Of a stretch of DNA of 64,000 nt, positions 33,156 through 55,343 are shown piece after piece; the stretch's first letter is position 1, and every line of letters begins with the position of its first letter. The position numbers and the translations under genes were made by a program. The DNA lies in the sequence record PQ898602.1; one strand, given 5' to 3'. The notes beneath the pieces are model-generated. The model was not told where the DNA came from, did no database searches, and was given only the letters and a program-made list of their open reading frames with translations.

Positions 33156-33164
33156 ATTATACCA
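33156..33164 (-). promoter_or_regulatory. extended -10 promoter candidate for kdsA
   Basis: TG-G-TATAAT on the minus strand, 24 nt upstream of the ATG at 33132. Confidence 0.45.
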
Positions 33165-34060
33165 TGATGGCATCATATTTTCCAGAGTACAACAGACTAA
33201 GAGAGTGTTGGGTTGGTCGTGCATATGATTCTTCACTCGTAACTGATACATTTGTTAAAGATATCCTTGATGAAACCGAAGAGGATCTGGTAAACTTTAG
33301 TCAAATGTTAAGAGATTTGGAAGTCGAAGTCAAACGACCGACTTACAAGAATCCTGATGTTACTCGGAAACCACAACTTCTACACGCACGGGATCACCTC
33401 CAATATCTTAACGGCAAACTTTATGTCGGTCCAAGGTATGAAGACAATATTGCTGATTGGTTGGAGTTGCTTGATGGTAGAACTCCTTTTGTCACTCTGG
33501 ATAATCTATGTGCGCCTTCTGTAGTTCGTGCCGACAGAGTTTACTTTGATGCGGTATCATGGACACGTAAACGTTTTGAGTATTTTCAACATGGGAATCC
33601 TGATCTGCCTTGTGTTTTTGAACGACTCTCTTCTCGCGATTTTAACATCGAACGTCATACAGATGGTGTATTCTGTGTAGTCAAGGAAGGTGTAATCATC
33701 TCTACTCCACAAGGGCGTAACCTAGAGTATCTATTCCCTGAGTGGGATATCTTATATCTCGACCAGAATACTCAAGATCTCAATGATATGGCGAAGACCA
33801 AAGGTAAGTTTATTTGGTCTCCAGATCAGATCCCTGATGATTACAGGGACTGGGTGGGATATTCACCTGAGACTTTCTTTGATGTCAATGCACTTGCTGT
33901 CGATGAGAAACACTTCATGTGTACTCGATACAATAAACAGGTGTTCGATTTCCTGAAGAAACATAAGGTGGAACCAATTATCGTACCCTTCCGTCATAGA
34001 TACCTATGGGATGGTGGACTCCATTGTATGACTTTCGATTTCATTAGAGATGTTAGTTAA
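33164..34060 (+). CDS. amidinotransferase family protein (copy 1)
   Basis: RLRECWVGR, HARD, RHTDGVF, FDVNAL, GGLHCMT (catalytic His and Cys). Confidence 0.8.
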   Translation: MMASYFPEYNRLRECWVGRAYDSSLVTDTFVKDILDETEEDLVNFSQMLRDLEVEVKRPTYKNPDVTRKPQLLHARDHLQYLNGKLYVGPRYEDNIADWLELLDGRTPFVTLDNLCAPSVVRADRVYFDAVSWTRKRFEYFQHGNPDLPCVFERLSSRDFNIERHTDGVFCVVKEGVIISTPQGRNLEYLFPEWDILYLDQNTQDLNDMAKTKGKFIWSPDQIPDDYRDWVGYSPETFFDVNALAVDEKHFMCTRYNKQVFDFLKKHKVEPIIVPFRHRYLWDGGLHCMTFDFIRDVS

Positions 34061-34745
34061 TAAACAAGGAATAGTCGATGCAGAGTTGCAGACGTTTCCG
34101 TGGGAACATATTTTAGTTGATAATTTTATTGAAGAAAATACCTTCAATGAACTTCTGAAGATTGCAGATCATATTAAAAGTATTGAATCTACCTTCAAAG
34201 AATCTATTCATTATGTACCAGAATATAATGAATGTGTATTTAATTTGAAACACCTCATTCAGATTGGTGTAGATCCAAAGGTTGTTGAACTTTATGCAAA
34301 AGTTCTGGATGATATCAAGGAACTGAAAACTACAATATGGGATAAGTTTTCTGATCATCGGCATTGTGAAGAGGATAGGACTTATTGTAATGGTCATTTA
34401 AACTGGACAGGTTCTGGTGGTTACTATCACATTCATCCAGATTCCCATACTAAAAGTGTAAGTATTATTGTTTACTTTGATCCTGACGAAAATAACACTA
34501 CGACTCTTTGGGGTAAACCTGGAGTCGAATCTACATGTGTTAGACCTGAGTGGAAAAGGAACAGAGCCGTTGTATTCTGCCCTAACAAATCCACTTGGCA
34601 CTCTGTAGATACTACACATAGTAATAGGATGACTCTTGCATGTTTTATTGAGTTTGTTCCTGAAGATAAAAGTTCATACGGAAAGTTCACTGTAGAAAAT
34701 ATCAGATTCAGTAAAGATTACTCAGTAACTCAACTTAGAATCTGA
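34050..34745 (+). CDS. 2OG-Fe(II) oxygenase-like
   Basis: PWEHILVDNF, HIHPD, EWKRNRAVVF..TWHSV..R. Confidence 0.75.
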   Translation: MLVNKQGIVDAELQTFPWEHILVDNFIEENTFNELLKIADHIKSIESTFKESIHYVPEYNECVFNLKHLIQIGVDPKVVELYAKVLDDIKELKTTIWDKFSDHRHCEEDRTYCNGHLNWTGSGGYYHIHPDSHTKSVSIIVYFDPDENNTTTLWGKPGVESTCVRPEWKRNRAVVFCPNKSTWHSVDTTHSNRMTLACFIEFVPEDKSSYGKFTVENIRFSKDYSVTQLRI

Positions 34746-35470
34746 TGAAAGTTCGTTGTATATACGAAGAGAATATAAGAAATAGACTTCCTAATGTATA
34801 CATACCCATTCAGAAGTTCTGTAAGTTTCAATATTTGCGTGATGTAAATCTGAATAGTGCAAAGTATGATCGTATATTTGATCTATCCTTTGATGAGTTC
34901 AAACGTAATGTGAATTTCATTGCACAGAGAAAAGAGAACTGGAATAACTATAGAGTTTCATCAATACTTAAATTACCCATTCTATACAGAGACATGATGA
35001 ACTATGGGAAGTGGAGAGACCCTATCGTCTTCACCCCATATGAACATACTATACCCGATGATGGTTCTGGAAGAACATTGGTAAGTAAGATTTTCTTTCC
35101 AGACATGCCTTATGATCTTTTGTATTATGAAAAGGAACATGATGATCTGAAATCCTTAAAAGAACTGATTAATATCTTTCATGATAATGTTAATCCAGGT
35201 TCCTACAAAGTCATTGATGTTTATTACAAGTTATATGGTGACTTTGCATATAGTAGACAGATTGAGTTTTTGAAAGAAGAGAAAGAAGTAAAAGAATTTT
35301 GTGGTAGTTGGACTTTGGATATTGTTCAGGAGTTGACTTCTACCCTATTCAAAGAAATGATCAGAAAGATTCGTAGTGATCCGCCTCAGACAGATGATGA
35401 TTATATTGAGTTATTAAAAGACCTTGTAAAGATGGATTATAAATTTAATAGTAAGTCTATATCTTATTGA
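34745..35470 (+). CDS. family X copy 3
   Basis: LKLPILY..DPIVF..DDGSGRTLVSKIFFPDM. Confidence 0.6.
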   Translation: MKVRCIYEENIRNRLPNVYIPIQKFCKFQYLRDVNLNSAKYDRIFDLSFDEFKRNVNFIAQRKENWNNYRVSSILKLPILYRDMMNYGKWRDPIVFTPYEHTIPDDGSGRTLVSKIFFPDMPYDLLYYEKEHDDLKSLKELINIFHDNVNPGSYKVIDVYYKLYGDFAYSRQIEFLKEEKEVKEFCGSWTLDIVQELTSTLFKEMIRKIRSDPPQTDDDYIELLKDLVKMDYKFNSKSISY

Positions 35471-36150
35471 AAATGTTCTACAACATTGATAGTATTCTCA
35501 AATCTGAACTTCGTAAGGAACCTTGGGAACATAAAGTTGTTGATAATTCAATCAATCCAGAGGTCTTCAAGACTCTCTCCCTTATTCCTAAGATGATCCT
35601 GAATAAGAATAGGAGAGGGACACCTTTGATGAGTAAGTTCATTCATGAATCCAAGGTGGATTATGAGGGTGCTGTTATGGATCTTGAAGAACTACTTAGA
35701 GTGGGTCTTGCGGAAAATATGGTAGAACTTCTTTATGATTGTGGTAAGTCTTTGTTTGATGCTAAAGATCAGATCTTAGAACAATTCTCTTCTTACCAGA
35801 AGTCTTCTGATGGAGAATATCTTTTTGATGTAAACTTGCAGTTTTTATTCCCAGGAAATGAAGTGAGTTTGCATGATGGTGGGTACAATAGGACTCTTTC
35901 ATGTGTTACTTACCTGAGCCCAGATATACAATCGGGAACACGGCTCGGTGATTCAACAGAAGTTGAATGGAAGAAAAATAGATCAATAATCTTTGCCCCA
36001 CATAAAGGAGTGACTTGGACTTCTTATGAAAATCCCTATGAGATGCAGTCGTTCCGATTTGTCATCAGTACTTTTGTTGAATTTGTAGAATATAAGAATA
36101 TCGAATTTTCTACTGGTAAGAAGTTTAAATTCTTGACTGGTTCCAAATGA
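35467..36150 (+). CDS. degenerate 2OG-Fe(II) oxygenase-like paralogue of 34050
   Basis: PWEHKVVDNS, EWKKNRSIIF; HxD reads HDG and the distal His reads T. Confidence 0.65.
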   Translation: MKMFYNIDSILKSELRKEPWEHKVVDNSINPEVFKTLSLIPKMILNKNRRGTPLMSKFIHESKVDYEGAVMDLEELLRVGLAENMVELLYDCGKSLFDAKDQILEQFSSYQKSSDGEYLFDVNLQFLFPGNEVSLHDGGYNRTLSCVTYLSPDIQSGTRLGDSTEVEWKKNRSIIFAPHKGVTWTSYENPYEMQSFRFVISTFVEFVEYKNIEFSTGKKFKFLTGSK

Positions 36151-36887
36151 ATATTTCTTACTATGGTCACCCTCTGGAGATGTATCCTGGGTGTGTGAAT
36201 AAAGAGACTGAAGAAGATACAAGGGTATGTAAACAATACTACTTTGAAGAAGAACCAAAGATATTGAACTATGAATATCTTTCCGAGACTACTCTGTCAA
36301 AGAAAGATATGACTCATACGATCTCAGTTTTCATGGAGGATGTGAACCATGTGAAGGATGGGAAGTACGATGATCCTGATGATGTTGTGGTGAATACGCC
36401 TACACACTTCACCAAACTTCCAACTCTTTACAGACAACTAAAAGAGGATCCATGCCTTCACTATCCAATATGGTATTACCCTAATGGGAACATGTTCAGT
36501 GGTTTGGGTAGAACTCTGATCATCACTAGGTATTTCAGAGAGATGACTTTGGATAAAGTCGTTTGCAATACTCAAGATGGTGGTTCAGTGCAGGACTTGA
36601 TTGATCGTATTAGTCGGAGTCGATACTGGAAAAACAAGTCCTTGACAGGGATGAATGCAGTTGTTATGATTGCGAACGTCGAAGCGCCACCGCATCAACT
36701 CTTTGTCCGTCAGTTGGAGTTTTCGGATAAGACATCCGACCAATTCCTTTCTGGACCTTGGGTGGAGTCATACCTCCATATGGATGACCTTTGGAGAGAG
36801 ATGAAGAAACTCATTATCTCTTTCAATACGTCAGAACCAAGAGACTACTTGCGGCTTCTAGATAAATTGATTCGGATTGACGCTTGA
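36147..36887 (+). CDS. family X copy 4
   Basis: FTKLPTLY..YPIWY..FSGLGRTLIITRYFREM. Confidence 0.6.
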   Translation: MNISYYGHPLEMYPGCVNKETEEDTRVCKQYYFEEEPKILNYEYLSETTLSKKDMTHTISVFMEDVNHVKDGKYDDPDDVVVNTPTHFTKLPTLYRQLKEDPCLHYPIWYYPNGNMFSGLGRTLIITRYFREMTLDKVVCNTQDGGSVQDLIDRISRSRYWKNKSLTGMNAVVMIANVEAPPHQLFVRQLEFSDKTSDQFLSGPWVESYLHMDDLWREMKKLIISFNTSEPRDYLRLLDKLIRIDA

Positions 36888-36917
36888 CATTATACGGAAA
36901 TCCGTATATTATAAATA
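36884..36917 (+). promoter_or_regulatory. overlapping early and late promoters of psbA
   Basis: TTGACA-N17-TATTAT with TATAAATA at 36910-36917. Confidence 0.7.
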
Positions 36918-36959
36918 AATCAACGGATTAAGAAACGTAACGTTTTCTAATCTATTGTA

Positions 36960-37075
36960 AACTCTCCGTAAACCGAGACCTCTAGGGAGTATAAATCACG
37001 TCTCTAATACCCGAGCCGGAGGGTGGCACGGGAATACTTATAACTGGTTCGTCCCCCGAACTTTTACTTAACCCT
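36960..37075 (+). ncRNA. psbA 5' leader RNA, probably PhotoRC-II motif
   Basis: GAGAC...GTCTC and CCCG..CGGG pairings in the psbA 5' UTR; family assignment from recall and position. Confidence 0.55.
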
Positions 37076-37086
37076 TTTTCAAAACA

Positions 37087-38163
37087 ATGGCTACAACTCT
37101 TTCAAGACAACAAACATCTACCTGGGAAGACTTTTGTTCCTGGGTGACCAGCACCAATAATCGTCTGTATGTCGGTTGGTTCGGAGTCCTCATGATTCCT
37201 ACCCTTCTTGCCGCAACAGTCTGCTTCATCACTGCTTTCATCGCTGCCCCACCAGTTGACATCGATGGAATCCGCGAACCAGTTGCTGGTTCTCTAATGT
37301 ATGGTAATAATATCATCTCTGGTGCCGTCGTACCATCGTCTAACGCAATCGGTCTTCACTTCTATCCCATCTGGGAAGCCGCCTCTCTCGATGAGTGGCT
37401 CTACAATGGTGGTCCTTTCCAACTTGTAGTATTCCACTTCCTGATCGGCATCTATGCCTACATGGGTCGTGAGTGGGAACTCTCTTATCGTCTGGGTATG
37501 CGCCCTTGGATCTGTGTTGCATACTCCGCACCTGTTGCTGCTGCTTCTGCAGTCTTCCTCGTCTATCCTTTCGGTCAAGGTAGTTTCTCCGATGCTATGC
37601 CTCTTGGTATCTCTGGTACTTTTAACTATATGCTTGTATTCCAAGCAGAACACAATATCCTTATGCATCCGTTCCACATGCTCGGTGTTGCTGGGGTATT
37701 CGGTGGATCTCTGTTCTCTGCTATGCACGGAAGTCTGGTTACTTCTTCTCTCGTCCGTGAGACGACTGAAACTGAGTCCCAGAACTATGGTTACAAGTTC
37801 GGTCAAGAAGAAGAGACCTACAACATCGTCGCCGCTCATGGTTACTTCGGTCGTTTGATCTTCCAATATGCATCCTTTAACAACTCACGTTCTCTGCACT
37901 TCTTCCTCGCTGCGTGGCCTGTTATCGGCATCTGGTTCACTGCTCTTGGTGTTAGCACCATGGCATTCAACCTTAACGGATTCAACTTCAACCAGTCTAT
38001 CCAAGACAACCAAGGACACGTCCTTAACACTTGGGCAGACGTTCTGAACCGCGCTGGTCTCGGTATGGAAGTCATGCACGAGCGTAATGCTCACAACTTC
38101 CCTCTGGACCTTGCTGCTGCTGAGTCCACTCCTGTTGCGCTTTCCGCACCTTCTATCGGTTGA
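37087..38163 (+). CDS. psbA: photosystem II D1 protein (intron-free)
   Basis: [14 protein letters not shown]...[13 protein letters not shown]. Confidence 0.99.
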
Positions 38164-38184
38164 TCAAAAAATCGGTTATAATAG

Positions 38185-38208
38185 GGAGGTCTTAGGACCT
38201 CCTTTTTT
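38185..38208 (+). terminator. intrinsic terminator after psbA
   Basis: GGAGGTC-TTAG-GACCTCC-T6. Confidence 0.8.
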
Positions 38209-38231
38209 ATTCTAAAGTTTTGTAAAGTTTT

Positions 38232-38594
38232 ATGATTGGCAAACTCGACCCCGAAGAAAATGTTATGAATGATGATTCTGTAATTGCAAAACGCAAAGCA
38301 ATCGCTGTATGCAACCAAGGTGTAGTCCAAGACCTTTACGACACAATCGCTAAACTTGGATGGGATTGCTATGACGACATTGATGTTGAGATTGGTGGTA
38401 CTTCAGTTTCTGGTATTGATGTTGGTGAGGAGTACAACAAAAAGTGGCAGTCGCCTCTAGGTACTCGGAAGTATAATAAAGATGCATTTATTATTATCAA
38501 GAACCAAGGTCGTCGTGATTTGACTAAATCACAACCTTTCCCTGAAGGTGAGTTCAAACCCCAACATCCTCATGAACCTTATACCTCCAACTAG
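38232..38594 (+). CDS. hypothetical protein
   Basis: 120 aa ORF between psbA and psbD. Confidence 0.7.
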   Translation: MIGKLDPEENVMNDDSVIAKRKAIAVCNQGVVQDLYDTIAKLGWDCYDDIDVEIGGTSVSGIDVGEEYNKKWQSPLGTRKYNKDAFIIIKNQGRRDLTKSQPFPEGEFKPQHPHEPYTSN

Positions 38595-38802
38595 TCCTGA
38601 ATACTTTAACCAAACTTCAGAAGATCCATACGATCGACATACTTACAGGTTGCACCTTTCAAATGGTGAACATCGAGACTTCAACTCATGGGAAGAAACC
38701 GCTGGTGCATGGTTTCAATTACCTGCATTGTTTACTTCCCACGTTGAAGTGTTAGATAAACCTGACAAGAAACCTAAACGACAGACTAAAGGATTTAAAT
38801 AA
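38572..38802 (+). CDS. hypothetical protein
   Basis: ORF ending 2 nt before psbD. Confidence 0.6.
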
Positions 38803-38804
38803 CT

Positions 38805-39860
38805 ATGACAACTTCAACTTTAAATATTCCACAGAGGGGGTGGTTCGATGTCCTTGATGACTGGCTTAAACGAGATCGCTTTGTCTTTGTGGGTTGGTCT
38901 GGACTACTTCTTTTTCCCACTGCTTATCTTGCAATTGGTGGCTGGCTTACTGGCACGACGTTTGCTACGAGCTGGTACACCCACGGACTCGCAACTAGTT
39001 ACCTTGAGGGTGCTAATTTTCTTACAGCGGCAGTGTCAACTCCTGCTGACGCTATGGGTCATTCTCTTCTTCTACTTTGGGGTCCTGAGTCTCAGGGAGA
39101 TTTCGTCCGCTGGATCCAGCTTGGGGGACTCTGGGCTTTTGTGGCGCTCCACGGAGCCTTCGCTCTGATTGGTTTCATGTTGCGTCAGTTTGAACTTGCA
39201 CGTCTTATCGGTATCCGTCCGTACAATGCGATTGCGTTCTCTGGTCCCATTGCTGTTTTTGTTAGCGTTTTTCTCATCTACCCTCTCGGACAATCCAGTT
39301 GGTTCTTTGCGCCGTCTTTCGGTGTCGCGGCGATTTTCCGCTTCCTTCTCTTCCTCCAGGGTTTTCATAACTGGACGCTCAATCCCTTCCATATGATGGG
39401 TGTTGCAGGTATCCTGGGTGGTGCATTGCTTTCTGCGATTCATGGTGTTACAGTAGAGAACACGTTGTATCAAGATGGTGAACAAGCAAACACATTCAAA
39501 GCATTTGACTCAACCCAAGAAGAAGAAACCTACTCCATGGTTACCGCCAACCGATTTTGGTCACAAATTTTCGGTATTGCATTTAGTAATAAGAGGTGGC
39601 TTCATTTCTTCATGTTGTTTGTGCCTGTTATGGGTCTTTGGACTTCTTCTATCGGCATCATCGGACTTGCACTCAACCTTCGGGCGTATGATTTCGTCTC
39701 GCAAGAAATCCGTGCCGCAGAAGACCCCGAGTTTGAGACGTTCTATACTAAGAACATCCTGCTCAACGAAGGTCTACGTGCTTGGATGGCGCCAGTAGAT
39801 CAACCTCACGAACAATTCATCTTCCCTGAGGAAGTTCTTCCCCGTGGTAATGCACTCTAA
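38805..39860 (+). CDS. psbD: photosystem II D2 protein
   Basis: [16 protein letters not shown]...[10 protein letters not shown]. Confidence 0.99.
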
Positions 39861-40053
39861 ATAACCAATGCATGATCACGAATCAACAATACCTATGTGG
39901 GTCTACCTGACCGGCATAGGTCTTTTTCTTTTTACAATATTGTGTTTTGGGATAATGTTAGCGGGAATGGTATACACATGATTACCTCGGAGATGCCTTA
40001 TAAACTAAGAGAAATTATAATGGATACATGGCCACAACTCTACTGGTTGAAAG

Positions 40054-40710
40054 ATGCAAAAGACAAAGATAACAAGAATAAATTACGCAATAGAGACTTA
40101 TCGAAAGAATTGTAGTAGTTATACATTTGAACTATCTAAATCTAGAGTTGTTAAAGATGGAAATTATCGAGAGTGTCTTTTAGGAAAAAATGCAATATAC
40201 ATTCCAATCGATAAATGTGCTTCCAATTCCATGAGGAAATGTTTGATCGAAAAAGGTTTCATTTCCATGGAAAAAATTAAAGATCATGATACAGCACTTG
40301 AAAGATTTAAAGATTGGAATCATTTTGCAGTGGTTAGACAACCAATAAGCAGGTATGTGTCTGGACTAACTGAATTCATATTCAGATATTCACATGAATC
40401 AAATAAATGTTATGAGTATCTCGAAAAGTCATTGAGTGAAAATAAATTTATTTTTGATGGTCACACTATGCCTATGGATTGCACTCTTTACTTTAGGGAC
40501 AATGTAAAACTTTTCAAACTGAACGATAGTTTGCATGGTCAAGTTTCAAATTATCTTGGATTGGATTTGTTTCCAATGGAAAATTTGAATAGAAGTCTTG
40601 ATTCTTTTAAGGAATCCGCACAAAAATTGTTTGATAGATATTGTAAGAACAACCCAGAATTTTATGAATTTTGTAAAAAAGATTTTGACATCTGGGAAAG
40701 TGCATGTTAA
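40054..40710 (+). CDS. sulfotransferase family 2-like protein
   Basis: YIPIDKCASNS (5'-PSB) and VVRQPISRYVSG (3'-PB) motifs. Confidence 0.7.
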   Translation: MQKTKITRINYAIETYRKNCSSYTFELSKSRVVKDGNYRECLLGKNAIYIPIDKCASNSMRKCLIEKGFISMEKIKDHDTALERFKDWNHFAVVRQPISRYVSGLTEFIFRYSHESNKCYEYLEKSLSENKFIFDGHTMPMDCTLYFRDNVKLFKLNDSLHGQVSNYLGLDLFPMENLNRSLDSFKESAQKLFDRYCKNNPEFYEFCKKDFDIWESAC

Positions 40711-40733
40711 ACTAGAAAAAAATTATCGAAACT

Positions 40734-41006
40734 ATGTTGTATCTGTTTTCTAAAACTGAATGTGGACCCTGCATTCTAGTAAAGAAATACTTTGCTGCGA
40801 TGAATGATTCTCGAACAGAATCAATCAAAGAAGTTTATTTGGATGATGGTGTAGGTGAAGAGGCACTAGACTTTGCTCGTAAATATAGTGTTACCGCAAC
40901 TCCTGTTCTTATTGTCACTGATGAAAATGGTGAAAAGGTAGAAGAGTTTGAGGGTGGTGTACCTATCACTAAAAACATTACACGACTATTGGACACTTAC
41001 GCATGA
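40734..41006 (+). CDS. thioredoxin/glutaredoxin-like protein
   Basis: CGPC active site, cis-Pro TPVL. Confidence 0.85.
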   Translation: MLYLFSKTECGPCILVKKYFAAMNDSRTESIKEVYLDDGVGEEALDFARKYSVTATPVLIVTDENGEKVEEFEGGVPITKNITRLLDTYA

Positions 41007-41428
41007 CTGAAGCCTACGTTCAGAGAGTATGGTTCTCTGTTATCTACAAAGCAACTGGAAAGAAGAAATGTGATTGTGGATGGGAAGTAGATGCAATGAA
41101 CATTGTCGCTATGAATCCACAAGAACTGACATATGTAAGGAGTGATGCACACCTTATGGGTCAGGTAGTTGATGTTACTCCCCCGCCTGCACTTCCCACC
41201 AATGAAGTCGTCAAGGCTGACGGATACTCTACTAGTGAGGAACCATTCAGACCTAGAGAAATCTCTTCGGAAATTGTGGTAAATATGGATGGAGGAGTTG
41301 GTGGATCTTGGGAGGAGAGAGAAGTTGAATATGAACATATCAACGATGATCCTCATGATGGTTGGTGGTTAAAACCTGAACATCAAAAGAGTCTACCCGA
41401 ATCCGATTTAGAACCATTCGTACCATGA
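41003..41428 (+). CDS. hypothetical protein
   Basis: 141 aa ORF, ATGA overlap. Confidence 0.65.
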   Translation: MTEAYVQRVWFSVIYKATGKKKCDCGWEVDAMNIVAMNPQELTYVRSDAHLMGQVVDVTPPPALPTNEVVKADGYSTSEEPFRPREISSEIVVNMDGGVGGSWEEREVEYEHINDDPHDGWWLKPEHQKSLPESDLEPFVP

Positions 41429-41567
41429 CTAACGAACTTCCAGAGTGGAAAAAGAGAGCACTCTCTGATCCATCACTCAAAGAAAAACAGGTTGACATTC
41501 TTATGAATGGACCTAAGAAGTTGACAGATGCGTGGTTTCTTCAAGCAATGAAATACAAATACGACAG

Positions 41568-41891
41568 ATGAGTACACCTGCACAACAACACAACGCACTC
41601 CTCGCAGTTGGGGAGTTGATGAAAATCATGATTGACGAGGAAAGATATCCAGATCTTCCCGAGAAGATTAGGTTGTCTGTTAAAGCACTCCTCCGCGACT
41701 ATCCAGATCGGTCTGTAATTGATTCTCTATATGAGGGTCAGACTTATGGAGAAGTTCCTGAAGATGACTCGGATATTACTGAGGAAGAACGAGAAAGTAA
41801 TGACAGGTTTTATAACAATAATCAAACCTGGGATACTCCTGGATACAAATGGAAAACTCAAGTAGAATTCTCTCCTGCAGAGGATGCTTGA
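41568..41891 (+). CDS. hypothetical protein
   Basis: ORF; start corrected to ATG 41568. Confidence 0.6.
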   Translation: MSTPAQQHNALLAVGELMKIMIDEERYPDLPEKIRLSVKALLRDYPDRSVIDSLYEGQTYGEVPEDDSDITEEERESNDRFYNNNQTWDTPGYKWKTQVEFSPAEDA

Positions 41892-41916
41892 CAAACACTC
41901 GGACATGCATTACTAT
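41888..41916 (+). promoter_or_regulatory. sigma70-like early promoter for tRNA-Ala
   Basis: TTGACA-N17-TACTAT. Confidence 0.7.
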
Positions 41917-41925
41917 GTCTTTACT

Positions 41926-41998: not shown

Positions 41999-41999
41999 T

Positions 42000-43020: not shown

Positions 43021-43021
43021 T

Positions 43022-46648: not shown

Positions 46649-47267
46649 TGGTAACCTTTGGATTTGGAAATATGAAAAGAAGTTAGACTCTGACTTCTGT
46701 AGGAATGTTATACGAAAATTTGATAGAGACTTCAATCTTTATCATGGTGTAACTTTAGGTGATAAACCACAATATACAAGAAAAATATCCACAGACCTGG
46801 CGATCTCCGATCTCCCTGCATGGAGAGAAGAAGATACAATATTTGGGGAACATCTCCACGAAGGTCTTAATGCTTTCTGGAATTATTGTGAAGACAAACT
46901 ATTAGGTTATGAATTAGATTGGGACTATCCTGTTGACGACACTGGATATCAAATTCAAAGAAGTAAAGGTGGTGAGGGAAAATATGATTGGCATCACGAT
47001 GCATTTTATGACCCCAATGCATTTGACTGGTGCGAAGAATATGGACCTGCTAAAAGATACTTTACTTTTATTTGGTATCTGAATGATGTTCCTGGACCTG
47101 GAGGATACACTGAGTTTTACGACGGAACTCAAATTCAACCAGAAGAGGGTCAGCTGATTCTCTTTCCCTCAACTCACACTTTTATCCATAGGGGAGTCAG
47201 GCCACCCGTTGGACAAGACAAATATATATGTACAGGTTGGATCTATCATCCAATGAATCAAAGTTGA
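46635..47267 (+). CDS. 2OG-Fe(II) oxygenase (prolyl 4-hydroxylase-like)
   Basis: YDWHHD, TFIWYLNDV..GG.T.F, FPSTHTFIHRG..KY. Confidence 0.88.
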   Translation: MSSVNGNLWIWKYEKKLDSDFCRNVIRKFDRDFNLYHGVTLGDKPQYTRKISTDLAISDLPAWREEDTIFGEHLHEGLNAFWNYCEDKLLGYELDWDYPVDDTGYQIQRSKGGEGKYDWHHDAFYDPNAFDWCEEYGPAKRYFTFIWYLNDVPGPGGYTEFYDGTQIQPEEGQLILFPSTHTFIHRGVRPPVGQDKYICTGWIYHPMNQS

Positions 47268-47292
47268 CTTTTGATTTTTTCAGAAGTATAAT
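47264..47292 (+). promoter_or_regulatory. sigma70-like early promoter
   Basis: TTGACT-N17-TATAAT. Confidence 0.65.
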
Positions 47293-47312
47293 TATCTTAT
47301 TGTGGTATCACT

Positions 47313-47702
47313 ATGTTTAAATCAAACAACGAAGTTGGACAATATTGTCCACTTGTCAAGAAAAACTGCATTGAAAACAAGTGTGCTTGGTGGATGCATG
47401 TCAGAGGTTTGAATCCTCAAACTGGTGAAGATATTGATCACTGGGGATGTGCAGTTACTTGGTTGCCTATGTTGACTATTGAAAACTCTCAACAACAACG
47501 TCAAACTGGTGCTGCTGTAGAGTCATTCCGAAATGAAGTTGTTAAATCAAACAGGATGAATAGAGACCTATATATGGAAGGTCTAAAAGCCATGGCTGAC
47601 GGGTCTCCTATCCTTCCCGTTCAGGTCACACCACTGACTAATCAAAACCTTTTAGAAGAAGAACCTACGGAGGAACCGAAAAATGAGGATGGTAGTAACT
47701 AG
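47313..47702 (+). CDS. Cys-rich hypothetical protein
   Basis: CPLVKKNC...CAWW...WGC. Confidence 0.65.
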   Translation: MFKSNNEVGQYCPLVKKNCIENKCAWWMHVRGLNPQTGEDIDHWGCAVTWLPMLTIENSQQQRQTGAAVESFRNEVVKSNRMNRDLYMEGLKAMADGSPILPVQVTPLTNQNLLEEEPTEEPKNEDGSN

Positions 47703-48111
47703 GGATGGAATGATCCAAATCGATGGATATGGTTACGACGGATGTAATATTTCTTTCGTAAGTGACATGAGTTGGATCCCTGGATATGATAGAAAGGAGT
47801 GGGGTGTATTCCATGCCCTACAATGGTATGATAAACCTGAATGGGATGATCCTACTGAAGACGAAATGGAAGGTTATCCTTACGGAGAGATTGAGTTTAC
47901 CAACTATCCGCCTGCACATAAAATTACTGAACTGGGTATCTTTGAAGCCGCAGTCGTTGAGTGGGAAAGACAAAAGAAAGCAGAAGAAAGTAGAATTGCT
48001 GCTGAAGAAGAGGAAAGAAAGGCAGAAGAAGCACGTCTTGCTGAGGAAGAGGCTAAAACTCTTGACACTTATCTAGAATTTGACTTGGAAGATTTATTGA
48101 CTGATCTCTGA
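47683..48111 (+). CDS. hypothetical protein (possible tail-fibre assembly-like)
   Basis: HALQWYD..GEIEF, acidic coiled-coil tail. Confidence 0.55.
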   Translation: MRMVVTRDGMIQIDGYGYDGCNISFVSDMSWIPGYDRKEWGVFHALQWYDKPEWDDPTEDEMEGYPYGEIEFTNYPPAHKITELGIFEAAVVEWERQKKAEESRIAAEEEERKAEEARLAEEEAKTLDTYLEFDLEDLLTDL

Positions 48112-48112
48112 C

Positions 48113-49396
48113 ATGAAACAAACACTTATTGATAATAATTACCTAGTAATTAAAAACTTTATCGATGTAGAAAGAGCTGCTGCATTATGTGAAGAGTTTA
48201 AAGATCATTGCGAAAGTAATAATCTACCTGGAGATCAACAGGTAGAAGAATCTCATGCTGCATATAATTACATGAGTTTCTTGGAACTTCTTACGGAGAA
48301 AACTCCAGAAGTTTCTAGAGCAATTGAAGAAAATGTACTTCCTACGTACACTTATGCTAGGATTTACAAGAATGGTGCAATCCTGAAACCTCATATGGAT
48401 AGGGATGCATGTGAGATTTCTTTGACCGTTCACCTTGATGGTGATATGGGGTGGCCAATCTTTGTTCAGACTCCTGACGGATCAACTGCAGAAGTTGTTC
48501 TTGAACCAGGAGATGCTTTAGTCTATTTGGGATGTGAAGCTCTTCATTGGAGAGAAGAGTTCAATGGGAATTATTATGGTCAAGCATTCTTGCATTATGT
48601 AAGAAGTCGTGGACCCCGTGCATACGCATTCTTTGATAATGATAAGGATTCTGTCACCCCAAGGACTCAAATTGATGAAGAAAAGAAAGTCGATTGGAAA
48701 GAAGTACCTAAACTAGACAAACCAGAATCTACAGAAAAGAGAGATAAGTTCCGTTTCAATAAGAAACCACAATTCACTCCCTCTGCAAGAGAAGAGAGAG
48801 TTCTCCAATCTAAAAAAGAAGAGTTGTTGACTTCCACTCTTGAAAGTTATATCAAAATTTTTGAAGATGAAGTTCCTACAGAACTTTGTAACCGCATTCT
48901 CGACGAGTATGTAAACTCTGATGACTGGGTTCCCGCAGAAGTTATTGATAAGAATGCACCCGTCAACAAAGACATCAGAAATTGTAGTTGTGTCTACATG
49001 AGTAGTCCTGAATGTATTGAAAAAAATCAGGTAGTTAGATCTAAACTAGATGAAGATCTTCATGCAGTTATGATGAAAGTTGCAGAAAAATATGCAGGGC
49101 TTTTCCCGAATATTAACATCTCTATGGATACTGGTTACAATCTTCTGAGATATGAAACAGGTCAATTCTATACAACTCATTGTGATGACTACAAGGATGA
49201 CCCAAGAGTTCTCTCATGTACTGTTTCTCTGAATCATGAGTATGATGGTGGTGAATTTTCATTCTTCAATGATGAAATGTTAGTTCGCACGAATACTGGT
49301 GGTGTAATTTGTTTCCCATCTAACTTCATGTACCCTCATGGTGTTCGAGAAGTTGTTAAAGGCACTCGATACGCAATCGTTACTTGGTTTAGATGA
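48113..49396 (+). CDS. tandem two-domain 2OG-Fe(II) oxygenase
   Basis: Domain 1: HMDR..CEIS..HWRE..FLHYV; domain 2: HCD..GGEF..FPSNFMYPHGV..RY. Confidence 0.85.
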   Translation: MKQTLIDNNYLVIKNFIDVERAAALCEEFKDHCESNNLPGDQQVEESHAAYNYMSFLELLTEKTPEVSRAIEENVLPTYTYARIYKNGAILKPHMDRDACEISLTVHLDGDMGWPIFVQTPDGSTAEVVLEPGDALVYLGCEALHWREEFNGNYYGQAFLHYVRSRGPRAYAFFDNDKDSVTPRTQIDEEKKVDWKEVPKLDKPESTEKRDKFRFNKKPQFTPSAREERVLQSKKEELLTSTLESYIKIFEDEVPTELCNRILDEYVNSDDWVPAEVIDKNAPVNKDIRNCSCVYMSSPECIEKNQVVRSKLDEDLHAVMMKVAEKYAGLFPNINISMDTGYNLLRYETGQFYTTHCDDYKDDPRVLSCTVSLNHEYDGGEFSFFNDEMLVRTNTGGVICFPSNFMYPHGVREVVKGTRYAIVTWFR

Positions 49397-50184
49397 CCAC
49401 ACTTAATTCTATACCTCCTATCCGTTACTTGAACTTAGACAAGAACGAAGATAGGAGGTTTTTTATTGAGAAACAATTTGAGAAGTATGGTGTTACCAAC
49501 TTCAAAAGGATTAGTGCGGACAGATATGGTGTAGATAAGTATGATGAGTGGAGTTTTGAAGGAGAGTTAAATGAGAGACCTAGACTCTCCACTCTTTTGA
49601 ATCAGTTTCAAAGTATCATTGACTGGTATCATGAGGATAGTTCGGAAACATGTATTATTGCTGAAGATGATCTCAATCTAGATCTTTGTAAGTATTGGAG
49701 ATTTGATTGGAACTACTTTGAGTCACATCTACCATGCAACTGGGATTGTATTCAACTTCATGTTGTGGGTGAGAAGTATATTCCGATGGGATTGTCGATA
49801 AGAAACAGAACTCTTCACTCTGCTGCTTGTTATCTAATCAATAGAGACTTTGCAAGAAAGTTAAAGAAGATATTCTATAGACAGGGAACATTTGAGTTTC
49901 CGATAAACTATGGATACCACCATTCTTGGCCTCAATATCATTATCAGTCTGCAGATTTCTTACCATATAATATTGGAGTTACCTATTCATTTCCCTTGTT
50001 TATTACCAACTCTAGTTTCAAGAGTGATAGTTTGGAAGGTAAGTTGATAAACCAAATGGTAATCAAATCAGATAAAGTTGTTGCAAATTGGTGGGTAAAT
50101 AGATCAAAAGACTACTCTCTGGATGATTTGTTCTGTTGTCAGAATCCAGATCGAATGAAACTTATTGTTCCAATCAAACAATGA
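49393..50184 (+). CDS. GT25-like glycosyltransferase
   Basis: YLNLD..DRR, IIAEDDL, WDCIQL, CYLINRDFA. Confidence 0.7.
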   Translation: MTTLNSIPPIRYLNLDKNEDRRFFIEKQFEKYGVTNFKRISADRYGVDKYDEWSFEGELNERPRLSTLLNQFQSIIDWYHEDSSETCIIAEDDLNLDLCKYWRFDWNYFESHLPCNWDCIQLHVVGEKYIPMGLSIRNRTLHSAACYLINRDFARKLKKIFYRQGTFEFPINYGYHHSWPQYHYQSADFLPYNIGVTYSFPLFITNSSFKSDSLEGKLINQMVIKSDKVVANWWVNRSKDYSLDDLFCCQNPDRMKLIVPIKQ

Positions 50185-50990
50185 ATAAACTAGAAGGGTT
50201 ACCAAAAATATATTATATCAATCTCGATGATCGCCCTGATCGTAGAGAGTATATGGAAGACCAGTTTAGGTGGTGGGAGATTAGTAACTATGAACGTGTG
50301 AATGCTTCTAGATTTAGAAAAGAAGAGTGGTCCGATTGGTGTGACATGGTTCACTATCCAGAATTCTATCCTTCACATAGACATAGATCAGTTGCAGTTT
50401 CTTTATCACACTTTGAATGTTTGAGAGAGTGGTACGAAACTACTAATGAAGATCAAGTCATTATCTTGGAGGATGATACCGACTTTAGTAATGTTGAAAA
50501 CTGGAACTTTACTTGGAAAGATGTAATGGATCGTTTGCCTTTTGATTGGGAGGCGTTTCAGTTCTGTTATAACTCTGTAGATTACTTTAGATGTAACCTT
50601 CACCTTAAAAGTCAGACCAGTTTTAATGGTCCAATTCTACTGACTAGACCTTATGTGAAGAAACTATTAGATCTTTATTTTAAAAAAGGAAAGTATAATT
50701 TCATCACAAAATATTTTGGATCACCTTATCTGGGTTATCCTATCAATGATGATAAACATTGTATCAGAGATGTTGATAACATGATTGGGCATCATGGAAG
50801 AGTTTATCAAATGCCTCTTGTAGGTCAGAATACTGTGCTTGATGAAGAACGTCGAACTCCCCATCTTTTCTGTTCTGCATCATTGAAAAGATTCTGGGCA
50901 AAGGAACATGACATTGATGATCTTTTCTCATATAATACTGATAAAGATTTGAGTATGACATATAAACTAAATCCTGGTATCCGAAAATGA
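50181..50990 (+). CDS. GT25-like glycosyltransferase
   Basis: YYINLDDRPDRR, SLSH, IILEDD. Confidence 0.75.
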   Translation: MNKLEGLPKIYYINLDDRPDRREYMEDQFRWWEISNYERVNASRFRKEEWSDWCDMVHYPEFYPSHRHRSVAVSLSHFECLREWYETTNEDQVIILEDDTDFSNVENWNFTWKDVMDRLPFDWEAFQFCYNSVDYFRCNLHLKSQTSFNGPILLTRPYVKKLLDLYFKKGKYNFITKYFGSPYLGYPINDDKHCIRDVDNMIGHHGRVYQMPLVGQNTVLDEERRTPHLFCSASLKRFWAKEHDIDDLFSYNTDKDLSMTYKLNPGIRK

Positions 50991-51676
50991 AGAAGTATTG
51001 TCTTAATCATACTCAAGAACTCAGAGATCATACAGAAAAGGAGATCCGTTCTCTGGGGTGGGATAACTTTGAAGGTGTAGTTTATCCAGAACCTTTGGAT
51101 GATCAGAACAAATCAGAACTCATCCTTGGAGTTCTTGATAGGTGGTTGAAAGAAAGTCATGATGACATGGTAATGATCACCTTTGATGATCTATTCTATG
51201 GGTTCTATCGACACTCTGGTTTCAATCTAGATCTTATCGTAAATAAAACACCAGAAGACTGGGATAATATCTTGTTGGGATTTGAGAATCTCCATGGAAC
51301 TATTCCATTCTTCATGCATAAGACTATGGAGTCTCATTTGTCTGGTCCTACCATCTTGAAGAGATCGTATGCTGACAGGTTGGTAAACATTGTTGGAGAT
51401 TCTCCACAGGTTTGTGATAACTTGTGGAAAGATAATTTTTCATATCATTATTTCTTAAACAAATGTGGTAAGAGTTATGCATATCCACTCTTACCTAGAC
51501 ATTATAAATTAGTAAGTGACTCTAGAGTAGATCTAGAGAGACAAACAAGAATGTATTCTATATTCTGGACCAAGTATTATGGTAAGGAGTATCCTAAAGA
51601 AAACTTCTTCAAACTAGAGAGTGAACCATGCCTTAATACGGACAGATTACTCTATCGCAATAGGAAATTGATTTAA
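50987..51676 (+). CDS. divergent GT25-like protein
   Basis: YCLN, ITFDD (EDD degenerate), PEDWDNILL, ILKRSYADRL. Confidence 0.5.
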   Translation: MKKYCLNHTQELRDHTEKEIRSLGWDNFEGVVYPEPLDDQNKSELILGVLDRWLKESHDDMVMITFDDLFYGFYRHSGFNLDLIVNKTPEDWDNILLGFENLHGTIPFFMHKTMESHLSGPTILKRSYADRLVNIVGDSPQVCDNLWKDNFSYHYFLNKCGKSYAYPLLPRHYKLVSDSRVDLERQTRMYSIFWTKYYGKEYPKENFFKLESEPCLNTDRLLYRNRKLI

Positions 51677-52263
51677 TGTTTCACTTAGTCCGTCAGTTTG
51701 AGAGAGAAATTGCAAGATTCTATGGTGCTCCTTATGGTATCGCCACTGATTCGTGTACCCATGCGATTGAGTTGTGTCTTCGTTATGGTGGATTCAATAA
51801 CGTAACCATACCGACTCACACATATGTCTCAGTTCCAATGACCTGTAACAAACTAGGTCTTGATTGGGAATGGAAAGAAGAGAAATGGAATGACTGGTAT
51901 CTGATTGGTAACACAAACATTGTTGATGCTGCAGTTCTGTGGGGTGCTGACACATATCTACCTGGAACATTCATGTGCCTCAGTTTCCAGTACAAGAAAC
52001 ACCTATCTCTTGGTCGAGGTGGTATGATTTTATGTTCCGATGAGGATGCTGTTCGTGCATTACGGAAGATGGTTTACGATGGTCGTGATATCTTAGAACC
52101 CTGGAGAGATCAGAACATTTCCACCATGGGTTATCACTATTACATGACGCCCGAGGTGGCAAAAATGGGTATTGATTTACTAAATGGTCGGAAAAAATTT
52201 CCGGCAAAAAAATGGAGCCACAGGGATTATCCTAATTTGTCGGACATGGAGGTGTTCAAATGA
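51676..52263 (+). CDS. truncated-format DegT/DnrJ/EryC1/StrS PLP aminotransferase (195 aa)
   Basis: FEREIA..YGIATDSCTHAI, DAA, SFQYKKHL..GRGG, GYHYYM. Confidence 0.8.
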   Translation: MFHLVRQFEREIARFYGAPYGIATDSCTHAIELCLRYGGFNNVTIPTHTYVSVPMTCNKLGLDWEWKEEKWNDWYLIGNTNIVDAAVLWGADTYLPGTFMCLSFQYKKHLSLGRGGMILCSDEDAVRALRKMVYDGRDILEPWRDQNISTMGYHYYMTPEVAKMGIDLLNGRKKFPAKKWSHRDYPNLSDMEVFK

Positions 52264-53060
52264 GAGAGATTCCGAACCTTGATGTTCATATTACGCATGA
52301 TTGCAATTTTCAGTGTGAGAACTGCTCTCATTTTATGCAACATAAGTTTCGGGGAACTCATATCTCTTTAGAAGAAATAGAATCCTGGTATTCAAAGTGG
52401 TATCAACGTATTCTTCCTACTAACCTAGGTTTGCTTGGAGGAGAACCTTTCCTTCATCCAAATCTCCCAGAGATGTGTCATCTTTCTAGGAAGTATTTTC
52501 CCAACTCTGAAATAGAAGTAGTAACAAATCTGACTCTGGTGCATTTACACCCAGAACTTTGGAAAGACCTAATCAAATCTGATATTATTCTTTCCATTTC
52601 AATTCATAGTCGAGATCCTGACTACGCAAAAGTATTGCAACCCAAATTGGAAATCGCAAAAGAATGGAAACGAAGAGGTGCGAAGGTAAGAGTTGTAGAT
52701 TCTGTAAAAGAATGGAATAAAGTCTATATGGGTGATGGCGAAGATATTCTTCCTTATGAACATTTGAATCCTCAGGAAAGTTGGAATAATTGCCCTGTTG
52801 GTCAAATCTGTTTTCAACTACATGAAGGTCATATCTGGAAGTGTGCTCCACTCGCATTCTTACCTATGATGAAGAAGAAGTATCCGAATATTTCCGATAA
52901 GTGGGATCCATATCTAACGTACAAACCATTAACTTCTGATTGTAGTGATGAAAAACTTGAAAGTTTCTTCAATAGAGGATGTGAAATGTATTGTTCAATG
53001 TGCCCATCAGTAAGAGAACATCAAGATAAACAAAATCCATTGATTAATAGAATACGATGA
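52260..53060 (+). CDS. radical SAM protein with C-terminal Cys cluster (SPASM/twitch-like)
   Basis: CNFQCENC, LLGGEPFLHP, VVTN, C..C..WKC, CEMYCSMC. Confidence 0.88.
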   Translation: MREIPNLDVHITHDCNFQCENCSHFMQHKFRGTHISLEEIESWYSKWYQRILPTNLGLLGGEPFLHPNLPEMCHLSRKYFPNSEIEVVTNLTLVHLHPELWKDLIKSDIILSISIHSRDPDYAKVLQPKLEIAKEWKRRGAKVRVVDSVKEWNKVYMGDGEDILPYEHLNPQESWNNCPVGQICFQLHEGHIWKCAPLAFLPMMKKKYPNISDKWDPYLTYKPLTSDCSDEKLESFFNRGCEMYCSMCPSVREHQDKQNPLINRIR

Positions 53061-53893
53061 AACTGAAAGGATTACCTGAAATATATTATCTTAATCTTGA
53101 CGAAAGACCTGATCGAGTTGAATATACGGAAACTCAATACGAAAAACATGGTATCACCAACTTCCGTAGATGGTCTGCATCTGAATATCAACTCTATAAC
53201 TTCAAAGAGTGGAGGAGTAAGGTCAGATTAAATGATATGACCGAGTGTAAGAAGTTGAAACAACATATCATTGAGATTGCGATCTCCATGTCTACAATGG
53301 ATATGTTAAGACACTGGTATGAGAACTCCACGGAACCCTATGTCCTCTTAATGGAGGATGATTATGATCTTCAGTGGATTGATTACTGGCATTTTGACTG
53401 GGAATATCTAATGAATCATCTTCCCTTTGATTGGGATTGTATTCAGTTGAGTTTTGAGAATGAAAAGGTCATTCCCTGTTTCCTTCACCCCATCCATCCA
53501 TACCACTGCACTGGTGCTGCACTTATTAATAGACCATATGCAGAAAAGTTGATAAGACTATTATATAAGGATGGAAAGTATGATTTTTCCCAACGGATTC
53601 AAAATTACAAGTGGGGAAAAATGCTGGACATGCCTAATAGGACTATTGACTACTTCTTATGTCATGCAGGCAGAACGTATTCTATTCCTCTGATTAGTCT
53701 TAATCCTGGTATGGGAAGTTATAGTAAAAATATAAAGAGAAATGATAGACCCGACTTGGATCTTGCCTGGAGGGCCTATAATAAGTGGTGGAAAGAGTTG
53801 CGAGATGATTACTCTCTAGAAGAGTTTTTCATGTTCGGTAAACCAAATGATAGATATATTACAAGGAAAGAACCAGGTCTGGACAAGTATTAA
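53057..53893 (+). CDS. GT25-like glycosyltransferase
   Basis: YYLNLDERPDR, LLMEDD, LPFDWDCIQL. Confidence 0.75.
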   Translation: MKLKGLPEIYYLNLDERPDRVEYTETQYEKHGITNFRRWSASEYQLYNFKEWRSKVRLNDMTECKKLKQHIIEIAISMSTMDMLRHWYENSTEPYVLLMEDDYDLQWIDYWHFDWEYLMNHLPFDWDCIQLSFENEKVIPCFLHPIHPYHCTGAALINRPYAEKLIRLLYKDGKYDFSQRIQNYKWGKMLDMPNRTIDYFLCHAGRTYSIPLISLNPGMGSYSKNIKRNDRPDLDLAWRAYNKWWKELRDDYSLEEFFMFGKPNDRYITRKEPGLDKY

Positions 53894-54387
53894 TGGATCA
53901 CATTAAACCACAATGGGATATCGAAGATTTTAAGAATCTTGATTATACCTATGCAACTCATAATGATCCTCTGTTAGTGAACGAATATTTGTGGGCAGGT
54001 CATAATAAGGAGAAACTTTCCATCTATAAATATCATGAACCCAATCCCATGCCGACGTGTATGGAATATGTGAAAGGTCTTTTCTCGGATTGGGATAGTG
54101 TTGGACTTGCCGTTAATTATTTCAAACCAGGTCAATATCTACCACTTCACGTAGATCTATTTGGTAGATATTTGAAAATCCATAACACCAAACCCGAGAA
54201 TGTAAATCGGTGCATGGTAATGTTAGAGGATAGTTCACCTGGTCAGATTTTACAGATTGACGATGTATGTCACTGCAAGTGGAAATCGGGAGACTGCTTC
54301 TACTGGGAATACGAAACACCTCATGCTTTCTATAACATGAGTATGATAGATCGATACGCAATTCAAGTTACTGGTGTAGTGAGATGA
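53893..54387 (+). CDS. 2OG-Fe(II)/AspH-like cupin oxygenase
   Basis: LPLHVD, GQIL, WKSGD, TPHA..N..R..IQVTG. Confidence 0.65.
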   Translation: MDHIKPQWDIEDFKNLDYTYATHNDPLLVNEYLWAGHNKEKLSIYKYHEPNPMPTCMEYVKGLFSDWDSVGLAVNYFKPGQYLPLHVDLFGRYLKIHNTKPENVNRCMVMLEDSSPGQILQIDDVCHCKWKSGDCFYWEYETPHAFYNMSMIDRYAIQVTGVVR

Positions 54388-55343
54388 AAAGTACAAATGA
54401 GTGGGATCCACTCAAAAAAGTGATTGTTGGTGTTGCTGATTATGCAAGAATCCCTGAGATGGATAAAAGTCTCAGACACATCAACTATGCAGATAGACAA
54501 GATGTTTCCGATGTCATCAGTGGATTGTATCCCAAACAAGTCATTGATGAAGCAAATGAAGATCTAGAAAACTTTGCAAACTTCCTAAGAGTTTGTGGAG
54601 TGGAGGTAGTAAGGCCGCATCCTGAACCAACTGGATATTACAACTTCTGCCCCAGAGATGTTGTCGTTGTTCATGGTGAAACGGAGATTGCGGCTCCGAT
54701 GCCTTTGAAAGCAAGACGATTTAACTTTGGGTCGATTGCACATTATTTGAACAACCTTACACCTGTTACTTGCACTTACAATGATGCATTGTATAACGAG
54801 AATTGTATTGGTGATAAGGACACTCTTGCACTGACAGAGTACGAACCTGCCTTTGATGCTGCCAACATCATCAGAGCGAACGATCAGATCCTCTACCTCC
54901 TGTCTAATAGTGGTAACAGGAAAGGTGCCCAGAAACTCCAGACACTCCTGCCAGAGACCGAGGTACACCTCTTAGAGGGTGTTTATAGTTATATGCATAT
55001 AGACACGACTGTCGCGTTCCTGAGGGAGGGCCTGCTACTTGCCAACCCCGAAAGGATTAAGGATCGTGATGTCCTTCCTGGTCCATTCAAAGACTGGGAT
55101 ATTATCTGGTGTCCAGAACCAGTTGACATCGGACATTACCCTGGATATAACAATGCTTCCACTTGGATTAACATGAACTTATTCAGTATTAATCCCAATC
55201 TGGTTGCTCTTGAGATGAATCAAGAACCCACTAGAAAAGTCCTGGAACAACATGGTATCGAGTGTGCAATGTTGCCTATGAGACATTCTAGAACTCTAAG
55301 TGGATGTTTCCACTGCGTAACCTTAGACCTGGAGAGAGGATGA
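54384..55343 (+). CDS. amidinotransferase (StrB1/AGAT-like, copy 2)
   Basis: NEWDPLKKVIVG, CPRD, FDAAN, YMHIDTT, GCFHCVTLD (Asp-His-Cys triad). Confidence 0.9.
   Translation: MKSTNEWDPLKKVIVGVADYARIPEMDKSLRHINYADRQDVSDVISGLYPKQVIDEANEDLENFANFLRVCGVEVVRPHPEPTGYYNFCPRDVVVVHGETEIAAPMPLKARRFNFGSIAHYLNNLTPVTCTYNDALYNENCIGDKDTLALTEYEPAFDAANIIRANDQILYLLSNSGNRKGAQKLQTLLPETEVHLLEGVYSYMHIDTTVAFLREGLLLANPERIKDRDVLPGPFKDWDIIWCPEPVDIGHYPGYNNASTWINMNLFSINPNLVALEMNQEPTRKVLEQHGIECAMLPMRHSRTLSGCFHCVTLDLERG

Follow-up and report, generated by a model that had tools for sequence, protein, structure and literature searches.

L-arginine:glycine amidinotransferase (AGAT; 1jdw) has an Asp254-His303-Cys407 triad (PMC3684758), and the same branch of the pentein fold holds the polyamine amidinotransferase HsvA (5wpi) and the saxitoxin biosynthesis enzyme SxtG (6u1r), two enzymes showing that bulky amines other than amino acids can be accepted (PMC12371840). 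StrB1 of Streptomyces griseus (1bwd), the L-arginine:inosamine-phosphate amidinotransferase of streptomycin biosynthesis, also belongs here. In this study we describe two genes of this fold, AT1 (copy 1) and AT2 (copy 2), in a stretch of 64,000 nucleotides (the window) from Synechococcus phage S-SCSM2R (PQ898602.1), a marine T4-like cyanomyovirus of 244 kb. We give an even chance to the reading that both are amidinotransferases of the AGAT/StrB1 branch which serve two sugar-tailoring modules of the phage. What is new is AT1 as a virus-specific variant, while AT2 is a further member of a known enzyme kind.

At the annotation level both genes are already public. A protein-level search of a phage collection returned S-SCSM2R with 100% identity for each, and positions in the window equal those of the record minus 180186. 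AT2, with 319 amino acids (aa), is exactly GenBank ORF309, labeled "inosamine amidinotransferase," and AT1, with 298 aa, is ORF266, labeled "glycine amidinotransferase," for which GenBank starts one codon later. The 2025 genome paper mentions the two ORFs briefly and separately, without connecting them (PMC12801897). ORF305, ORF306, and ORF309 are grouped there as "antibiotic synthesis genes" of "unclear" purpose, and ORF266 is listed together with ORF269 among 23 proteins from CsCl-purified virions (PMC12801897). Our literature search found no paper characterizing a phage enzyme of the amidinotransferase fold. Across the 244-kb genome, AT1 and AT2 are the sole two genes of their fold.

Judged by its sequence, AT2 is a canonical StrB1-like amidinotransferase. 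Residues 4-318 align end to end with StrB1 (348 aa) at an E-value of 1.2e-60, and the alignment includes the N-terminal NEWDPL..VIVG motif, as the original prediction of a StrB1-like N-terminus had it. Weaker matches to HsvA, AGAT, and SxtG follow, and the search of PDB sequences returned amidinotransferases only and no hydrolases. D92, D158, H205, D207, and C311 of AT2 align with D108, D179, H227, D229, and C332 of StrB1. The nucleophile C311 and the catalytic H205 (AGAT C407 and H303) are both present and are joined by the triad Asp, D158 (AGAT D254), so that the full Asp-His-Cys triad predicted for this copy is indeed there. The Asp pair that holds the guanidino group (AGAT D170 and D305) corresponds to D92 and D207, while R224 aligns with the Arg equivalent to AGAT R322, the residue for the carboxylate of the donor. 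These residues and R91 do not vary among 129 homologues, of which 121 are phage-like and 8 bacterial, and AT2 is very likely an active arginine-dependent amidinotransferase.

AT1 is more divergent. As a single sequence it matches AGAT weakly and at the C-terminus only (E 2e-3), whereas a profile built from 35 relatives aligns with AGAT along the whole length, as three collinear segments (E 3e-17). The AlphaFold2 (AF2) model of AT1 has a predicted local distance difference test (pLDDT) score of 83, and a Foldseek search with it places AGAT, StrB1, SxtG, and HsvA at the top (E about 1e-13), with agmatine deiminases, DDAH, ArgZ, and arginine deiminase behind them (E 1e-9 to 1e-6). The hydrolytic enzymes of the fold (arginine and agmatine deiminases, DDAH, and ArgZ) are the poorer fit for either gene, as both the AT1 model and the AT2 sequence are closer to the transferases. 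Aligned directly, AT1 and AT2 share 24% identity (E 1e-14). AGAT is the best match of AT1 in both sequence and fold, although AT1 is about 90 residues shorter than the crystallized AGAT chain (386 aa) and shares only 18-20% identity with it in the fold alignment. H165 and C288 correspond to AGAT H303 and C407, D77 to D170, and D167 to D305. The R76-D77 pair is kept and R185 lies near the position of AGAT R322, with an offset of one residue. Two distinct genes of the amidinotransferase family, each with a catalytic His and Cys, are real, as predicted. The implied lack of a triad Asp in AT1 also held: Cys116 takes the position of AGAT Asp254.

The AT1 family is a large, almost exclusively viral branch of the AGAT/StrB1 fold with no Pfam model. 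Its members are encoded on at least 580 viral contigs, and the clusters nearest to AT1 in a protein atlas are 96-100% viral. None of the 258 database relatives has a Pfam annotation. These relatives fall into two tiers, one close (identity 56-97%, length about 292 aa) and one distant (31-34%, about 335 aa). The catalytic Cys is found in 80/80 members of the distant tier and in 29/38 of the close tier; at R185, 35 of the 38 close relatives keep the Arg, and the distant tier has Gln. In the Cys-less subclade (P0029-P0037; loci L029, L031, and L045), Ser or Arg replaces the Cys, and D77 and R185 are missing as well from three members. These proteins may be pseudo-enzymes or may perform a different chemistry.

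The genes that accompany AT2 are the strongest evidence for a role in sugar tailoring. Close homologues of AT2 (66-99% identity) occur on at least 330 viral contigs, including T4-like cyanophage contigs that carry gp59, PhoH, Thy1, and SpeD. In 80 related viral loci, AT2 is accompanied by a truncated sugar aminotransferase, here called mini-DegT (74 loci), by a conserved 164-aa protein (71), by GT25-like glycosyltransferase paralogues (71), and by a large 2-oxoglutarate (2OG) oxygenase (47, a count limited by contig ends). A carbamoyltransferase lies no more than three genes downstream in 30 of the 80, and a radical SAM enzyme is present in 24. AT2 is a core gene of this cassette in hundreds of uncultured T4-like cyanophages. 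Bacterial homologues (44-46% identity), found in Burkholderiales, Acidobacteriota, Bdellovibrio, and other groups, lie in loci that encode Wzz/tyrosine-kinase and Wzy proteins, GT2 and GT4 glycosyltransferases, and NodZ-like, WcaI-like, and FkbM proteins. These loci also contain genes for Fcl/4,6-dehydratase-like short-chain dehydrogenases/reductases and for full-length DegT proteins of the 4-amino-4,6-dideoxyhexose type. Three of these loci (L009, L010, and L022) carry homologues of the phage partners of AT2, namely a radical SAM enzyme with 46% identity in a betaproteobacterial locus (L009:15209-16246) and mini-DegT homologues with 51-58% identity near the AT2 genes of L010 and L022. A gene set common to phages and bacterial polysaccharide loci suggests that AT2 tailors a sugar and speaks against an antibiotic.

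Compared with the known members of its branch, AT2 resembles StrB1 in sequence but not in setting. StrB1 acts in an aminocyclitol pathway, whereas no genes of an inositol or aminocyclitol pathway were found in the AT2 cassette or in the 80 related viral loci, and the context of AT2 is one of GT25-like and mini-DegT genes in phages and of Wzy-type loci in bacteria. The GenBank name "inosamine amidinotransferase" is thus a similarity label and not a substrate assignment, and an identity of AT2 as an inosamine-phosphate amidinotransferase is not supported, as no aminocyclitol cluster surrounds it. HsvA and SxtG match both AT1 and AT2; however, they are remoter than StrB1 and work in pathways for small-molecule virulence factors or toxins rather than in glycan cassettes. 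The only other matches of AT2 in cultured phages come from Campylobacter phages (CP220, CPt10, and their relatives), whose putative glycine amidinotransferases have been annotated since 2010 and are very distant (22-25% identity), with another host and another context. Given these annotations and the hundreds of viral-contig members in each family, the original prediction overstated its case in calling this chemistry unusual for a virus.

AT1 relatives point to a different sugar. [quoted passage not shown] The order KdsB, KdsA, AT1, 2OG oxygenase is kept in near-identical relatives, and remoter members of the close tier, on contigs of non-T4 phages, adjoin KdsB-like genes in three further arrangements. 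One tightly overlapping operon consists of a HisC-like aminotransferase, AT1, an IolG-like oxidoreductase, a KdsB-like gene, and a HAD phosphatase. As a functional analogy, this operon resembles the route of Shewanella to 8-amino-8-deoxy-Kdo (Kdo8N), in which Kdo is oxidized and transaminated before CMP activation (PMC4402001), with an amidination step added. In S-SCSM2R itself the likeness is incomplete, with neither an aminotransferase nor an oxidoreductase next to AT1. A guanidino-Kdo has, as far as we are aware, never been described.

The distant relatives of AT1 (31-34% identity) lie in a different setting. A translationally coupled operon of a cupin, an AT-like gene, DUF6614, and a QueE-like radical SAM gene is seen in L067:1177-10557, and the same type of operon occurs in L006, L054, L061, L075-L078, and L082. 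Upstream are genes for GalE, FolE, a GMP reductase (above the NCBIfam cut-off), a purine phosphoribosyltransferase, and a YhhQ-like transporter. In gene content, this operon resembles a purine or 7-deazapurine pathway with a pentein-fold enzyme in it, and the purine genes suggest that other members of the AT1 family may act on purine-like amidines.

Six IMG/VR contigs hold both AT1 and AT2, 10-15 kb apart, as do three larger viral records, among them the two that are rated 100% complete. This co-occurrence marks the pair as a lineage trait of large cyanophages and not a peculiarity of one isolate.

A plausible mechanism begins with the neighboring mini-DegT, which would aminate a nucleotide-activated keto-deoxy sugar. 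AT2 would then load the amidino group of arginine onto Cys311 and pass it to the sugar amine with release of ornithine, and the adjacent GT25-like and GT2 transferases would install the guanidino sugar on a glycan of the host surface or of the virion. The acceptor of AT2 would be an amino sugar or the amino substituent of a glycan building block. AT1 probably acts on another acceptor related to Kdo, although this is less certain; most likely, a Kdo-type intermediate (an amino-ulosonic acid) would receive the amidino group in a related reaction and would then be activated by KdsB. The original prediction had offered guanidino sugars or guanidinylated surfaces or DNA as products, and it is the sugar and surface-glycan branch that the gene context favors, because bacterial homologues of AT2 lie in polysaccharide loci and relatives of AT1 beside KdsB-like genes. 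Nothing in S-SCSM2R supports the DNA branch.

Several observations weigh against the preferred reading. We know of no guanidino sugar described in a bacterial or phage glycan, and a literature search found no paper that links amidinotransferases to O-antigens. The mini-DegT that should supply the amine is truncated, with about half of a normal DegT missing, and in S-SCSM2R no aminotransferase or oxidoreductase adjoins AT1. The missing triad Asp, whose site is S/C/N/T across the AT1 family, makes the activity of AT1 less certain and its chemistry may differ, although the nearly invariant D129 on the next strand might serve as a stand-in. The Cys-less variants still stand beside KdsB-like genes, in two of the KdsB-linked arrangements, which implies that amidino transfer is not always required there, and other close relatives of AT1 lie in unrelated contexts with PhoH, a PD-(D/E)XK nuclease, a lipase, or a ribonucleotide reductase. 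Neither AT1 nor AT2 matches a Pfam family at E<=0.01, including the amidinotransferase/ADI family PF02274. In NCBIfam AT1 is unmatched and AT2 has only a weak DDAH match (E 0.021; 14.6 bits, with the cut-off at 450). For AT2, the lack of a Pfam match at this threshold indicates a clade that is poorly covered by curated families.

Other functions have to be considered, and the one already in print is a diffusible product of the aminoglycoside/streptidine type, such as an antibiotic or other secondary metabolite (PMC12801897). StrB1 of streptomycin biosynthesis is the best solved relative of AT2, one homologue lies in a Streptomyces contig (L017), and aminoglycoside pathways often include carbamoyltransferases and radical SAM enzymes. 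However, the cassette and its relatives hold no inositol/aminocyclitol genes (synthase, inosose dehydrogenase, or kinase) and no export or resistance genes, most of the bacterial homologues examined are in Wzy/Wzz-type surface-polysaccharide loci and not in antibiotic clusters, and there is no evident gain for a lytic phage with a latent period of 6-8 h, so that we consider this explanation improbable. The enzymes could instead use free small amines or arginine (polyamines, glycine, or lysine as acceptors, or arginine converted to ornithine or ammonia) and redirect the nitrogen and polyamine metabolism of the host during infection. The polyamine enzyme HsvA is the second-best solved match of AT2, SpeD (AdoMet decarboxylase) is encoded about 4.5 kb downstream and kept nearby in relatives, the fold also has deiminase and dihydrolase branches, and some AT1 relatives stand alone among ordinary phage metabolic genes. 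Yet the proximity of SpeD reflects the general synteny of T4-like cyanophages, amidinotransferases give both proteins much better scores than hydrolases do, and AT2 is tightly and almost invariably linked to glycan genes in bacteria and, in phages, to mini-DegT and GT25-like genes, so that we rate this as rather unlikely. The same glycan linkage of both genes led us to reject a creatine or guanidinoacetate role, as given in catalogues of ocean auxiliary metabolic genes.

The detection of ORF266 and ORF269 in CsCl-purified virions raises the question of whether AT1 is a virion-associated protein that acts with the co-detected 2OG oxygenase to modify Arg or Lys in structural proteins, or a non-catalytic binding protein. 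The absent triad Asp, the related subclade without Cys, D77, and R185, and the almost exclusively viral distribution of the family would fit such a role. The authors of the genome paper caution, however, that both proteins may just be abundant contaminants (PMC12801897), while AT1 keeps the Cys, the His, both Asp residues, and an Arg near the AGAT R322 position, and its linkage to KdsB points to a sugar pathway; a virion role is unlikely in our view. Modification of phage DNA, for example with guanidinylated or amidinated bases, is very improbable. Although glycosyltransferases are numerous in the phage and a mom gene is present, and distant AT1 relatives lie in operons with FolE, GMP reductase, the purine phosphoribosyltransferase, the YhhQ-like transporter, and the QueE-like radical SAM enzyme, neither cassette of S-SCSM2R contains a nucleotide-modifying gene. 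Close relatives of AT1 are linked with KdsB and not with purine genes, the change of R185 to Gln in the distant relatives suggests a different substrate, and the bacterial homologues of AT2 are in polysaccharide loci. Amidino transfer to sugars remains the reading that we prefer for both genes.

Table 1. Genes of the two amidinotransferase cassettes and a distant carbamoyltransferase in the S-SCSM2R window.
Feature	Position in window	Strand	Evidence
Carbamoyltransferase, about 42 kb from AT2	10641-12233	+	Pfam Carbam_trans_C E 1e-49
Four uncharacterized paralogues, interleaved with two 2OG oxygenases	30124-30984, 30959-31735, 34745-35470, 36147-36887	+	Pairwise BLASTP
KdsB (CMP-Kdo synthetase), two genes upstream of AT1	31732-32436	+	Pfam CTP_transf_3 E 9e-34; NCBIfam NF003952 200.6 bits, cut-off 193
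KdsA (Kdo-8-phosphate synthase), divergent, adjoins AT1	32398-33153	-	Pfam DAHP_synth_1 E 7e-45; NCBIfam NF003543 279 bits, cut-off 242
AT1 (copy 1, ORF266), divergent amidinotransferase-like, pentein fold	33164-34060	+	Family profile vs AGAT E 3e-17; AF2 model and Foldseek
ORF267, 2OG-Fe(II) oxygenase, overlaps end of AT1	34050-34745	+	Pfam 2OG-FeII_Oxy_3 E 1.5e-6
ORF269, paralogue of ORF267	35467-36150	+	BLASTP vs ORF267 E 1.8e-22
427-aa 2OG-Fe(II) oxygenase, opens cassette 2	48113-49396	+	Pfam 2OG-FeII_Oxy_3 E 5e-17
Three GT25-like glycosyltransferase paralogues	49393-50184, 50136-50990, 50987-51676	+	Pfam Glyco_transf_25 E 1.8e-7 (50136-50990); paralogy by BLASTP
mini-DegT, 195-aa truncated sugar aminotransferase	51676-52263	+	Pfam DegT_DnrJ_EryC1 E 1.8e-17
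Radical SAM enzyme	52260-53060	+	Pfam Radical_SAM E 9e-12
Fourth GT25-like paralogue	53057-53893	+	BLASTP vs 50136-50990 E 5.5e-44
164-aa conserved protein, directly upstream of AT2	53893-54387	+	Homologue in 71/80 viral loci
AT2 (copy 2, ORF309), StrB1-like L-arginine amidinotransferase	54384-55343	+	PDB StrB1 E 1.2e-60; HsvA 1.6e-38; AGAT 8e-36
GT2-family glycosyltransferase, downstream of AT2	55304-56146	+	Pfam Glyco_transf_7C E 3.5e-8; Glycos_transf_2 E 1e-5

The two cassettes of S-SCSM2R differ in their make-up (Table 1). Both had been described as glycosyltransferase/2OG cassettes, which holds for AT2 with its four GT25-like genes, a GT2 gene, and the 427-aa 2OG oxygenase. The surroundings of AT1 fit in part, with two paralogous 2OG oxygenases and KdsA/KdsB, but the sole glycosyltransferase-like neighbor is a weak GT8 match. 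Within cassette 2, the mini-DegT keeps the pyridoxal phosphate lysine motif SFQYKK, which aligns with SFQNGK of 3-amino-5-hydroxybenzoate (AHBA) synthase. Its short form is not a truncation specific to phages, as similarly short bacterial homologues lie near AT2 genes (L010:14573-15241; L022:4906-5388). The weak best matches of the radical SAM enzyme are viperin-like and MoaA-like models and PDB 7wzv. GenBank labels the 164-aa protein a 2OG oxygenase, an assignment left unconfirmed by searches of Pfam, NCBIfam, and PDB, in which it had no match. The sugar-tailoring genes of the phage appear to be scattered over three cassettes, and S-SCSM2R itself encodes NDP-sugar dehydratases/epimerases and a UDP-glucose dehydrogenase.

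In cassette 1, the adjacency of AT1 and ORF267 is kept in close cyanophage relatives, where the ORF267 cluster (c11) follows AT1 in L032-L039. ORF269 has no Pfam or PDB match of its own, and the PDB sequence search did not confirm it as a 2OG oxygenase. The four uncharacterized paralogues share an invariant G-x-GR-x-L motif in their alignment (A2). Their model is poor (pLDDT 64), the best PDB match is a non-significant one to a ParB-N domain (E 0.06), and homologue and atlas searches returned almost no relatives of this family. The segment of the window with KdsA and AT1 (32398-34083) is covered by contigs from four seawater metatranscriptome runs of one study at 90-99% identity, mostly 95-99%; in two of the four runs a contig diverges at 34083, a short way into the next gene. 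This is weak evidence of expression, given that DNA carry-over is possible and the contigs derive from relatives. The lipopolysaccharide of marine Synechococcus reportedly lacks Kdo. If so, the KdsA and KdsB of the phage would bring in a sugar that its host does not use.

Large cyanophages carry tens of kilobases of glycosyltransferase-rich cassettes, for which a guanidino sugar derived from arginine would, if true, be a concrete and testable output. It is possible, though doubtful, that a lineage of large T4-like cyanophages and bacteria with Wzy-type loci build undescribed cationic sugars, namely guanidino-deoxyhexoses by mini-DegT and AT2 and perhaps guanidino-Kdo by AT1 and KdsB, and that these are shown on the infected cell or the virion, where they would alter charge and recognition by other phages, grazers, and defense systems. 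If guanidino sugars are made, Burkholderiales, Acidobacteriota, and Bdellovibrio would be predicted to have the same chemistry in their surface polysaccharides, and the label "antibiotic synthesis" now in print would be corrected. The AT1 family, large and almost exclusively viral, is worth a family definition and one biochemical characterization.

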